Below are positions 58,021-61,287 of a stretch of DNA of 64,000 nucleotides, one piece after another. The position numbers and the translations under genes were made by a program. The stretch lies in NCBI RefSeq assembly GCF_006345805.1, contig NC_043001.1:131812001-131876000 (forward strand), written 5' to 3'. Source of the DNA: Octopus sinensis. Taxonomy: Eukaryota. The notes under the pieces were generated by a model. It was not told where the DNA came from and did not search any database. It was given only the letters and a program-made list of their open reading frames with translations. Position 1 is the stretch's first letter. The number at the start of each line of letters is the position of its first letter.

Positions 58021-58551
58021 TCAGATGACCAGGAAGTTAAGAAACAACAAGACAGGAAAGTAATAAAAATTTCTAGGCATGGATGAGTGGTTAAGAAACT
58101 TGCTTTTCAGTCACATGGTTTTTAGGTTCAGTCCCACTGTGCAGCATCTTGGGCAGGTTTTTCTACAATTGTCTTGGGCTGATCAATGCTTTATTAGTGG
58201 ATTTGATAAACAGAAACTGTGTGGTAGGCTACACACCATCATCATCGTTGTTTAATATCCACCTTCATCTATCTATCTATCTATCTATCTATCTATCTAT
58301 CTATCTATCTATCTATCTATCTATCTATCTATCTATCTATCTCTCTTTTCTCTCCTCTCTCTTTCTCTCTCTCTCTCTCTCTCTTCTCTCTCTCTCTTTC
58401 TCTCTCTCTCTCTCTCTCTCTCTCTATATATATATATATATATATATATATATATATAAAATATTATTAGAGACAAAACCACTATTTTGCAAAACAAACA
58501 AGGAAAGACTTAATCAATACATAAAATTTTAATAAATAGTCAAAAAAACCG

Positions 58552-58594
58552 CCACTACAATTGTTTCTTGTCTTGATCGACAATCTTCAGGTGG
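58552..58594 (-). ncRNA. Mirror copy of the type I hammerhead motif in the left arm
   Basis: Exact reverse complement of 61076-61118. Confidence 0.75.
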
Positions 58595-58629
58595 ACTTCC
58601 AATAAGTCAGTTTCAATTATGAAGTGAAA

Positions 58630-58906
58630 TTAAATTCTGTTCTTGGGAATGTAACAAAACTATTTTCATCCCAAGAACCACCATCACAAAATGCTTGCAT
58701 AATAGAAACAACACCTGCTGAAGGCAAAGGTTTTGCTGCATAGAAACTTGCTTTCCATGGATGAGCTGGCTGTTTTCTTCGAATTAAGATCAAGATGACA
58801 ACAACACTAAAGGAATAAATTGTTCAAACAGCAGAACCAACGGTGAACGCTTCTTCAGAGTAAAGTTTTTCCAAAGTAGCAAACGAAGTTGATGTAAAAA
58901 GCCCAT
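58630..58906 (-). pseudogene. ABCA2: Mirror copy of the ABCA2-like fragment in the left palindrome arm, frameshifted
   Basis: Reverse complement of 60761-61039. ATG at 58906. A 1-nt deletion near 58800 (GACAACAACAC vs GACAAACAACAC) gives [38 protein letters not shown]. Confidence 0.85.
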
Positions 58907-60760
58907 ACTGATGCAAATATGGTTAGCTTGCTCAATAAGAGAAAGGACACGACTGGCTTAGTTCGATATGAAATAGAAGAATATTGTTATGCTACAAGAA
59001 GGCTGGCTGAGAATACTGAAGAGGAGAAAACGGTAGATAACGTCACAACCAGTGATAATAATGAGACCAGGTGTTCCATTCTTAGAGCAGTCATGTATCC
59101 TTAAGGCAAAAGGAGGATATAAATAAAGTGAGGTACAGTGCAAAAATTTTAGTGATTACAGGTGTAACTAGTTTCGGAGTAAAATCCGAATCTTGTAATC
59201 CTTCGTGATAAGTGCGCAACTGGATACTTCTATAAAACAGAGGATAGCAAATGTCTAAGATAATAGTCCAAAAAATAACAAGTTTTCCTATTACATTTAG
59301 TTAGTCATATAGTTACATTAACTATATTTTGGTTCCTTTCTTCCTGTGTATTCGTGAAATTGGATGAAAATTTACGAAGTAAATGAATTTTATACAAGCA
59401 GGAAAAAATCGTGAAGAACACTGTTTTTATATGAAGCCTTCTCAAACATATACTCGGAAGGAAATTGTTGCTGATGTGATCAATAAAGAAGCTAGTTTCG
59501 GGATAAATAAATGACACAACAACCACAATAAATAATAGTGAGGATTTAAGGGAAAAGAAATGAATGTTGGGGTTTCATTTAAGCTGTGGAATAGTCACTT
59601 CCCATGCCAAGATAGTTCTTCCATCTCTATGTTAAAATACTCCATACATTTGAACACTTGTTCACAGATATTTGACTGCAACTTCGATACTATATAATGC
59701 AATACAAGAGAGATTTATCTTGTTTGGACTTTCTGTCTACTTAGAGCAGGCGACGGTCAGTCAGCAATTTCAGTCGCCTACTCGTTCAGTTGTTAACAGA
59801 TTATTGCACAACACACACCGCACCATCATAGAAGGTGAATTGATGGTGCGGTGTGTGTTGTGCAATAATCTGTTAACAACTGAACGAGTAGGCGACTGAA
59901 ATTGCTGACTGACCGTCGCCTGCTCTAAGTAGACAGAAAGTCCAAACAAGATAAATCTCTCTTGTATTGCATTATATAGTATCGAAGTTGCAGTCAAATA
60001 TCTGTGAACAAGTGTTCAAATGTATGGAGTATTTTAACATAGAGATGGAAGAACTATCTTGGCATGGGAAGTGACTATTCCACAGCTTAAATGAAACCCC
60101 AACATTCATTTCTTTTCCCTTAAATCCTCACTATTATTTATTGTGGTTGTTGTGTCATTTATTTATCCCGAAACTAGCTTCTTTATTGATCACATCAGCA
60201 ACAATTTCCTTCCGAGTATATGTTTGAGAAGGCTTCATATAAAAACAGTGTTCTTCACGATTTTTTCCTGCTTGTATAAAATTCATTTACTTCGTAAATT
60301 TTCATCCAATTTCACGAATACAGGAAGAAAGGAACCAAAATATAGTTAATGTAACTATATGACTAACTAAATGTAATAGGAAAACTTGTTATTTTTTGGA
60401 CTATTATCTTAGACATTTGCTATCCTCTGTTTTATAGAAGTATCCAGTTGCGCACTTATCACGAAGGATTACAAGATTCAGATTTTACTCCGAAACTAGT
60501 TACACCTGTAATCGCTAAAATTTTTGCACTGTACCTCACTTTATTTATATCCTCCTTTTGCCTTAAGGATACATGACTGCTCTAAGAATGGAACACCTGG
60601 TCTCATTATTATCACTGGTTGTGACGTTATCTACCGTTTTCTCCTCTTCAGTATTCTCAGCCAGCCTTCTTGTAGCATAACAATATTCTTCTATTTCATA
60701 TCGAACTAAGCCAGTCGTGTCCTTTCTCTTATTGAGCAAGCTAACCATATTTGCATCAGT

Positions 60761-61039
60761 ATGGGCTTTTTACATCAACTTCGTTTGCTACTTTGGAAAA
60801 ACTTTACTCTGAAGAAGCGTTCACCGTTGGTTCTGCTGTTTGAACAATTTATTCCTTTAGTGTTGTTTGTCATCTTGATCTTAATTCGAAGAAAACAGCC
60901 AGCTCATCCATGGAAAGCAAGTTTCTATGCAGCAAAACCTTTGCCTTCAGCAGGTGTTGTTTCTATTATGCAAGCATTTTGTGATGGTGGTTCTTGGGAT
61001 GAAAATAGTTTTGTTACATTCCCAAAGAACAGAATTTAA
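60761..61039 (+). pseudogene. ABCA2: N-terminal fragment (92 codons, intronless, truncated) of an ABCA2-like ATP-binding cassette transporter
   Basis: [92 protein letters not shown] aligns without gaps to the recalled ABCA2 N-terminus ([37 protein letters not shown].SAG...MQ..C.DG..DE.GF). The reading frame stops at TAA, no convincing GT donor follows, and no further ABCA exons are seen in the window. Confidence 0.85.
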
Positions 61040-61287
61040 TTTCACTTCATAATTTGAAACTGACTTATTGGAAGTCCACCTGAAGATTGTCGATCAAGAC
61101 AAGAAACAATTGTAGTGGCGGTTTTTTTGACTATTTATTAAAATTTTATGTATTGATTAAGTCTTTCCTTGTTTGTTTTGCAAAATAGTGGTTTTGTCTC
61201 TAATAATATTTTATAATATTTTACTATAAAATTGGATTTAATCCTAAATCTGATTTTTTTCCCTGTAAATTTGGATTTATTCCCTAA
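61033..61287 (+). mobile_element. Probable PLE terminal-repeat (pLTR)-like tail fused to the ABCA2 fragment
   Basis: Begins where ABCA2 similarity ends, contains the hammerhead, is AT-rich and ends at a (TA)n tract. The left-arm copy (58455-58637) is about 70 nt shorter. PLE identity is inferred from the ribozyme type. Confidence 0.5.
61076..61118 (+). ncRNA. Type I minimal hammerhead ribozyme motif (PLE terminal-repeat type)
   Basis: CCAC-CTGAAGA-TTGTC(GATCAA)GACAA-GAA-ACAATTGT-A-GTGG. Stem I CCAC/GTGG, core CUGANGA/GAAA, 5-bp stem II, palindromic stem III, predicted cleavage after GUA (61114). Confidence 0.75.

Follow-up and report, generated by a model that had tools for sequence, protein, structure and literature searches.

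A 2761-nt palindrome carrying spliced ABCA2-type exons in Octopus sinensis: a candidate head-to-head insertion by Penelope-like element machinery

Transposition of Penelope-like elements (PLEs) is the least understood of the retrotransposition mechanisms. A palindrome that appears to join the 5' end of a spliced ABCA2-type messenger RNA to the end of such an element is described here; it lies in a 64,000-nt stretch of the Octopus sinensis genome (NC_043001.1, positions 131,812,001 to 131,876,000), which was analysed as a whole and is referred to below as the window. PLE insertions often carry an adjacent, inverted and 5'-truncated copy in head-to-head orientation, and they are often extended by 30-40 bp at one end only; the canonical PLE clades have hammerheads in their terminal repeats, and Naiads prefer (TA)n (PMC8557442). 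The purified protein of an Anolis PLE cuts and extends both target strands and favours DNA that is AT-rich, and it starts reverse transcription from two internal RNA sites ~85-92 nt downstream of the hammerhead cut, the stretch between them being termed the 'tail' (PMC11167929). Rotifer PLEs mobilise host genes in trans, and the palindromes found there at head-to-head junctions were ascribed to self-priming (PMC3846280). In Penelope of D. virilis, an intron splice acceptor is located at the 5' edge of the hammerhead (PMC4209133). How tandem and inverted PLE structures are formed is stated to be an open question in both PMC8557442 and PMC11167929.

The locus is read here, with a probability of roughly 0.6, as a functionless retro-insertion made by PLE machinery from a spliced ABCA2-PLE chimeric RNA and inserted as a head-to-head pair. 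Its 2761 nt consist of two arms, 99.4% reverse-complementary according to BLAST, around a 12-nt spacer, and they form the sole large non-microsatellite palindrome in the window. The features, in window coordinates, are the following.

58425-58458, unstranded: left flank, (TA)17 microsatellite reported by Tandem Repeats Finder (TRF), preceded by (CT)n and (TCTA)n.
58455-59828, minus strand: left arm, 1374 nt, antisense copy (sequence comparison, BLAST), containing the tail with its hammerhead-like motif, frameshifted ABCA exons 1-3 at ~58633-58906 and a stretch resembling a 5' untranslated region (UTR) at 58907-59828; its outer limit is the short, canonical 3' end.
58552-58594, minus strand: hammerhead-like motif of the left arm, identical to the right-arm copy.
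59829-59840, unstranded: spacer TAGAAGGTGAAT, 12 nt, at the symmetry centre; non-palindromic, with a single occurrence in the window.
59841-61215, plus strand: right arm, 1375 nt (sequence comparison, BLAST).
59841-60760, plus strand: right-arm leader, 920 nt, poor in open reading frames (ORFs) and upstream of the ABCA start codon; no second copy in the window outside the arms of the palindrome.
60761-61032, plus strand: fused ABCA2-type coding exons 1-3, with inferred junctions 60826/60827 and 60920/60921; exon 3 ends at 61032, phase 2 in codon 91.
61033-61215, plus strand: non-ABCA tail common to both arms, 183 nt, lacking both poly(A) and a splice donor at its start.
61076-61118, plus strand: type I hammerhead-like motif of the right arm, CCAC/CUGAAGA/UUGUC-GAUCAA-GACAA/GAAA/C-AAUU-G/UA^GUGG, predicted cut after 61114.
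61216-61287, plus strand: extension found in the right arm only, 72 nt, starting inside a 10-nt duplication, ATAATATTTT x2 (61203-61223).
61287-61441, unstranded: right flank, imperfect (TA)n microsatellite (TRF).
33000-33066, plus strand: independent tail-end fragment, ~80% identical to the last ~60 nt of the tail and followed by a TA repeat.

Six differences separate the arms, namely two transitions (59187/60480 and 59153/60514), both of which are A/G on the sense strand with one G per arm, an additional CA at 59348-49 of the left arm, and three homopolymers contracted by 1 nt in the left arm (opposite 60866, 61024, and 61053). At the sequence level, the arms have the potential to fold into a hairpin. 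The spacer may be either the loop of a fold-back or a 12-nt length difference between two cDNAs, and the 920-nt leader is presumed to be the 5' UTR of the template RNA. Outside both flanking microsatellites the sequence is unique, and its left and right parts do not align with each other. The geometry given in a preliminary description of this DNA is confirmed by these values: it had claimed two ~1.37-kb arms around a 12-nt spacer, ~920 nt of repeat-free UTR-like sequence per arm (no other copy was found in the window), ~90 ABCA2 codons (92, intact on the right and frameshifted on the left), a hammerhead in both tails (a hammerhead-like motif, though negative with Rfam), a left tail shorter by ~70 nt (72 nt are exclusive to the right arm), and (TA)n on both sides.

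The right-arm ORF (60761-61039) is intact over 92 codons and ends with a stop at 61037-61039, and the left-arm coding copy carries two frameshifts, so that the insert is most likely a dead-on-arrival gene fragment. The best matches of the ORF are ABCA2-type N-termini with 57-69% identity (ABCA2 of Antedon and Menidia, a Limulus protein, Branchiostoma, and transcripts from two sequencing runs), and its alignment with the homologues is collinear with zero gaps. Intron positions of the relatives were mapped on each relative's own genomic DNA. Actinia has a donor after codon 22 (KKRSP/gtgagt) and a second one near codon 53, while the donors of tinamou ABCA1 are found after codon 22, at ...HEC, and at GGC TCC AT/gtgagc, the last being one codon from the codon-91 site. 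For Limulus, the donors are CCT/gtaagt (codon 22), TCA T/gtaagt (codon 53/54), and GGC AC/gtaagt (phase 2, codon 91), and the exon 4 that follows the codon-91 donor encodes VTSFLERL. An invertebrate contig, which has IMQAFCDGG in common with the window ORF, shows an acceptor before codon 23 and GCA AG/gtatgg in phase 2 at codon 91. The intron at about codon 53 is present in Actinia, tinamou ABCA1, Limulus, and vertebrate ABCA2.

The window ORF runs uninterrupted across the codon-22 and codon-53 intron positions of these relatives, and homology stops at 61032, the exact phase-2 donor nucleotide of Limulus and the invertebrate contig. At the end of exon 3 the window reads ...CCA AAG AAC AG/AATTTAATTTC, without a GT or GC donor and with a stop 5 nt further on; the codon-91 boundary itself is AAC AG/AATTTAATTT. 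Because the ORF crosses two intron positions and stops at a donor nucleotide without a donor, it is concluded that the arm was in all probability copied from an RNA in which exons 1-3 had already been joined and exon 3 had been joined to foreign sequence. With two introns absent and the end placed at an exon boundary, the earlier proposal that the arms derive from the 5' end of a host mRNA is supported.

Further ABCA exons were searched for by tblastn with five relatives, which matched just the two arms (58 kb were covered to the left and 2.7 kb to the right), and the well-conserved exon 4 (FFLPGF...IVEDPVA) was undetected anywhere in the window by the same search. The start of the tail was also considered as exon 4 in another frame and rejected, the similarity being at chance level and the hammerhead-like motif lying inside that stretch. 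As for a cephalopod parental ABCA2, a word-indexed protein search gave short proteins only, a 1034-aa chimeric query matched no mollusc, the representative search reached at most 69% identity, and an exact look-up of the 92-aa ORF gave no match.

These results also bear on the idea that the right arm is the true 5' end of a functional ABCA2 gene that has lost introns 1-2, the tail being intron 3 and the left arm its duplicate. Intron presence does vary (vertebrate ABCA2 has no intron 1, and the invertebrate contig no codon-53 intron), the right-arm ORF is intact, and the search reached just 2.7 kb downstream. A genuine gene start is nevertheless extremely improbable: the conserved end of exon 3 and its surroundings lack a GT or GC donor, an in-frame stop follows after 5 nt, exon 4 is not detectable in the window, and the end of the tail recurs elsewhere as the end of a repeat. 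The missing GT after 61032 and this recurrence also speak against the tail being ordinary ABCA2 intron, which the preliminary description had named as the outcome contrary to its own view.

The conserved core of the motif in the tail (C3 U4 G5 A6 N7 G8 A9; G12 A13 A14; A15.1-U16.1; H17) is complete at 61080-61114 according to pattern and descriptor matching. Helix I is open and has 4 bp (CCAC/GUGG), helix II has 5 bp, and helix III has 2 bp with the palindromic loop AAUU. A 2-bp helix III with a palindromic tetraloop is the architecture of metazoan hammerheads that work as dimers (PMC4209133). Folded as single strands, neither the motif nor the tail is more stable than shuffled sequences, which is expected for dimer-type motifs and therefore uninformative. 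A generic descriptor, written after the motif had been seen, reports just the two arm copies in the window; neither 300 dinucleotide shuffles nor 40 Mb of first-order random sequence gave a match. Judged by its letters, the motif is hammerhead-like and clearly non-random. A metagenome scan for the hammerhead core gave 0 matches.

Regarding the end of the tail, the fragment at 33000-33066 stops at the point that corresponds to the end of the left arm. Because this copy ends there and also next to a TA repeat, position 61215 is concluded to be the end of a dispersed element family. The 19-mer TAGTGGTTTTRTCTCTAAT has 3 occurrences in the window compared with 0.09 expected; metagenome matches to the tail-end 19-mer (n=14) were rejected as chance, their similarity covering just 20-27 nt. 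The arms end with ...TCTCTAATAATATTTTATA and no A-run, without the poly(A) and target-site duplications of the LINE-1 type. A tail foreign to ABCA is supported by these data. The preliminary description had called it a PLE tail, and this stands as far as a foreign, hammerhead-like sequence with a repeat-like end is concerned, while kinship to an autonomous PLE does not follow and the motif fails Rfam.

According to the distances from the predicted cut at 61114, the short end (61215) is 101 nt and the long end (61287) 173 nt away, compared with 85-92 nt in the PAc element. The position of the motif matters for another candidate source, a non-PLE retroelement such as a stringent-type long or short interspersed element (LINE or SINE) with a (TA)n-tailed 3' end, for which the motif would be incidental or a relic. 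Such a source would agree with the lack of an Rfam hammerhead, the non-canonical 10.1-11.1 pair, the lack of a PLE ORF nearby, the LINE-like reverse transcriptase (RT) remnants (identified by eye) and many SINE-like copies in the window, and the TA repeats, which come after each of the three 3'-end copies and might belong to the element. It would leave unexplained a hammerhead-like motif that is far beyond chance and lies at a PLE-typical distance from the insertion end. In addition, LINE twin priming inverts a 5' segment and does not duplicate the whole insert, dual-strand cutting and extension as well as optional end extensions are so far PLE-specific, and in the right arm 72 nt separate the canonical end from (TA)n. 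A non-PLE origin is given only a small chance.

As in PLE insertions, an adjacent inverted copy is present in head-to-head orientation. One outer end only is extended (72 nt, right arm), and (TA)n adjoins both sides of the unit as well as the third copy of the element end; these two traits may or may not correspond to those of PLEs. The extension is made up of three ~21-nt repeats at 61227-61285 (TRF) and may be either an optional PLE-type 'tail' or target DNA. The left (TA)17 is presumed to be half of a split target or a microsatellite adjoining the element end, and the TTTTATA at the left outer junction constitutes a microhomology with (TA)n. A target-site duplication is not definable inside (TA)n, and the TA tract could be element-borne. 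As for a direct pseudo-LTR (long terminal repeat), there is no direct tail repeat within the unit.

Separately, the flanking microsatellites are mirror-like, with (TCTA)n(CT)n(TA)n on the left (58267-58424) and (TA)n(TAGA)n on the right (61571-61683), which is a coincidence or a property of compound microsatellites. The mirror symmetry of (TCTA)n and (TAGA)n raised the idea of a larger palindrome, which was rejected since the unique sequence farther out does not align. A second, small and near-perfect palindrome follows on the right side, at a distance of ~450 nt (61733-61839; 53-nt arms, 96% complementary, 1 nt between them). Its sequence is unrelated to the ABCA tail, and it could be a foldback similar to miniature inverted-repeat transposable elements (MITEs) or another very short head-to-head insertion.

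The (TA)n tracts leave room for a single retro-insertion that was inverted and duplicated later at the DNA level, by a replication template switch or fold-back repair helped by the self-complementary repeat. (TA)n is its own reverse complement and is present on both sides, TTTTATA supplies microhomology at the left outer end, and the small divergence of the arms could be later mutation. This scenario, however, demands that both breakpoints coincide with the two ends of the insert and that the absent 72 nt be removed by an extra event. A switch between (TA)n tracts would, moreover, leave (TA)n at the centre, where the spacer is a unique 12-mer, and head-to-head pairs are in any case a routine primary product of PLE insertion. 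Later duplication thus appears quite improbable.

Near-perfect arms and a tiny spacer are also what an assembly artefact might yield, in which a real single retrocopy acquired an inverted second arm through a fold-back or chimeric long read or through a mis-join in the TA microsatellites. Contractions of homopolymers by 1 nt are a typical long-read error pattern, and 3 of the 6 arm differences are of this kind, all in the left arm, as for a poorly polished copy. Both junctions are in low-complexity DNA, where overlaps are unreliable, and a centre-spanning 75-aa ORF is absent from public assemblies by exact look-up, which is weak evidence; the same look-up with the 61-aa leader ORF gave no match and is uninformative. 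PLE structures are, in addition, known to trouble assemblies (PMC8557442). For an artefact, however, a random fragment-end fold and read-length arms are expected, whereas here the fold is exactly at the inner end of the insert, and the outer limit of the left arm coincides exactly with the element end attested by the independent copy. Both flanks are unique, no other such palindrome occurs in the 64 kb, and the arms differ by two substitutions and the CA indel, which goes beyond homopolymers. An artefact is considered unlikely.

Returning to insertion by PLE machinery, the template RNA would consist of a long 5' leader, spliced ABCA2-type exons 1-3 and a PLE terminal module of ~180-250 nt, joined at the donor position of exon 3, an arrangement partly visible in the arms. 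By the simplest route, a PLE or solo terminal repeat lying in sense orientation within intron 3 would have supplied the splice acceptor for exon 3; alternatively, the join might result from a template jump, end to end, onto a splicing intermediate consisting of the free 5' exon. The acceptor that abuts the hammerhead in D. virilis Penelope offers a ready route for splicing a host exon onto an intronic PLE. Splice capture predicts that intron 3 contains a member of the tail family in sense orientation, with AG directly before AATTTAATTTCAC. For the PLE RT and its GIY-YIG endonuclease, this module would have been the recognition signal and an AT-rich (TA)n stretch the site of cleavage. Reverse transcription would have begun ~100 nt downstream of the hammerhead and run toward the RNA 5' end, and the mirror copy would have been made in the same event as the first arm. 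Both the enzyme and the single event for the two arms are what we infer from the structure as a whole.

Two routes may have led to the second arm. In the first, snap-back, the first cDNA would fold back at its 3' end and copy itself, which makes equal inner ends automatic; a premature switch or a loss of 72 nt would then be needed at the outer end, where the TTTTATA microhomology with (TA)n is available. In the second, dual priming, both cleaved target strands would be extended on separate RNA copies and the cDNAs joined head to head by a template jump, so that the unequal outer ends would represent two alternative start sites and the 12-nt spacer a difference in cDNA reach. Both routes seem to fit equally, and dual priming also explains the unequal outer ends more simply. 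The snap-back put forward earlier is therefore compatible with the structure, but dual-strand priming, shown in vitro for a PLE, fits no less well. Under dual priming the centre would lie within ~12 nt of the RNA 5' end, while under snap-back it need not; a transcript start at the centre does not follow from snap-back since a cDNA that was terminated early can fold back equally well. A-to-I editing or RT error, each on separate RNA templates, would fit the two A/G differences, two sites being not significant.

A number of points weigh against an insertion of a spliced chimeric RNA by PLE machinery. PLEs are noted for intron retention, whereas the ABCA2 copy is spliced, and long perfect palindromes are unstable in vivo. 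The homopolymer contractions mentioned above match a typical pattern of long-read errors. Intron positions vary among the relatives, the codon-22 intron being absent from vertebrate ABCA2 and the codon-53 intron from the invertebrate contig, and intron loss occurs in some lineages, so the spliced origin is deduced from relatives and not from a cephalopod parent; the missing donor at 61032 holds independently of this caveat. With 72 nt, the extension has double the usual length of 30-40 bp; it is internally repetitive and could be target DNA. No RT/GIY-YIG ORF is found in the unit, and no Pfam domain in ten non-repetitive reading frames that are among the largest of the window. It is for Naiads that a preference for (TA)n has been published, and these lack canonical hammerheads. 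As for the hammerhead, its descriptor is post hoc, Rfam covariance models, run on the whole window, on 3.6 kb and on 121 nt, report none at the gathering threshold and none at E<=10 on the two shorter stretches, and the 10.1-11.1 pair (the first of helix II) is U-A and not the highly conserved G-C (criterion of PMC4209133). The earlier claim of a PLE-made insertion is thus upheld by an architecture that fits published PLE insertions, but not by a PLE reverse transcriptase ORF, which was not found in the unit.

The unique host-mRNA body makes the start sites, the inner junction and the spacer readable without ambiguity, and as a consequence snap-back and dual-strand priming become separable once the parental gene is compared. 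If correct, the proposed origin would show PLE machinery copying spliced host RNA with just ~180 nt of the element's 3' module, which complements host-gene mobilisation in rotifers, where introns are retained. For annotation, the locus is a decoy first exon of ABCA2; it is also a potentially fragile palindrome. The animal lineage of the host is known for massive RNA editing. On a far more speculative and improbable level, PLE ribonucleoproteins acting on host-PLE splice chimeras might be a general means of turning the 5' ends of genes, in one step, into long and perfect inverted repeats; if transcribed, these might give kilobase hairpin RNAs that serve as precursors of endogenous small interfering RNAs or as ADAR substrates directed against the parental ABCA2, and the A/G differences would be an A-to-I editing record of two templates. 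Were this so, palindrome centres would, under dual-strand priming, mark transcript 5' ends. The one-step route to host-gene capture put forward in the preliminary description is not wholly new, since PLE host-gene mobilisation and self-primed palindromes were described in 2013 (PMC3846280).

The window also contains a SINE-like dispersed repeat with the core ...CTGCTTGACAACNGGT...TTTGTTTA..., in at least 8 copies or fragments, two of them in the right flank of the palindrome.

61975-62140, 35889-36055, 37985-38046, 3314-3375, 11727-11788, 49889-49950, 57054-57117, 61474-61501: copies of the SINE-like repeat.

The segment 52904-54952 (~2 kb) is open in several frames and consists of a degenerate CA/TH-rich tandem array with the peptide-like unit ...LNCHVSDSHILIHPSHTPHNTQYTHTHTH..., and has the appearance of a minisatellite, not of a gene. 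Trinucleotide-type low-complexity arrays at 15090-16970, 25690-26190, and 40239-41911 give rise to spurious poly-Y, poly-I, poly-L, and poly-S ORFs. By eye, 43902-44420 (plus strand) and 57600-58000 (minus strand) contain what we take to be C-terminal remnants of LINE-like RTs (...LVRPILEYG...), for which Pfam gave no match. A microRNA gene at the symmetry centre (59764-59905) was rejected, as the Rfam matches are below threshold (MIR4387 with 68.5 bits vs a gathering cutoff of 84; mir-253) and any perfect hairpin scores; matches to Rfam microRNA families in (TA)n were dismissed as low-complexity artefacts.

In comparison with known systems, LINE-1 processed pseudogenes and twin priming, reportedly described by Ostertag and Kazazian in 2001, share with the locus the copying of a spliced host mRNA into the genome and priming by the second target strand, which produces an inverted segment. 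In contrast to them, the locus has no poly(A) and no definable target-site duplication, and in twin priming the inverted and the direct part come from one RNA and do not overlap, so that two complete copies are not formed. The metazoan type I hammerheads of PLE repeats and non-LTR retrozymes (Cervera & de la Pena 2014, 2020) have the same CUGANGA...GAAA...UH core, short helix I and 2-bp helix III with the palindromic loop AAUU, which implies dimer action; the motif described here differs by its U-A pair at 10.1-11.1 in place of G-C, its negative Rfam result, and its occurrence as a single dispersed copy rather than in a tandem array.

The Anolis Poseidon PLE studied in vitro (Frangieh et al. 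2024, PMC11167929) corresponds to the proposed mechanism in dual-strand cutting and extension, the AT-rich target, and two internal start sites giving short and long ends, but it is a biochemical system with the element's own RNA, in which a head-to-head genomic product was not demonstrated. As for PLE trans-mobilisation in Adineta vaga (Arkhipova et al. 2013, PMC3846280), host sequence on PLE termini, palindromic inverted junctions and proposed self-priming are common to both. There, however, whole intron-containing genes are placed between two direct terminal repeats and have target-site duplications, whereas here a spliced 5' gene fragment is joined at an exon boundary to a single 3' module, with no definable target-site duplication. 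A further comparison is with PLE insertions that have an adjacent inverted, 5'-truncated copy and an optional 'tail' (Evgen'ev & Arkhipova 2005; Craig et al. 2021, PMC8557442). The present locus differs from them in having a host mRNA as its body, with neither an RT/GIY-YIG ORF nor a direct pseudo-LTR, in its copies being equal within 12 nt, which makes the whole insert palindromic, and in an extension of 72 nt vs 30-40 bp. It shares with them the head-to-head copies, the hammerhead-type motif near the 3' end and the lack of poly(A), and may share the one-sided outer extension and the AT-rich or (TA)n site; most likely it extends known PLE behaviour rather than constituting a new kind of system.

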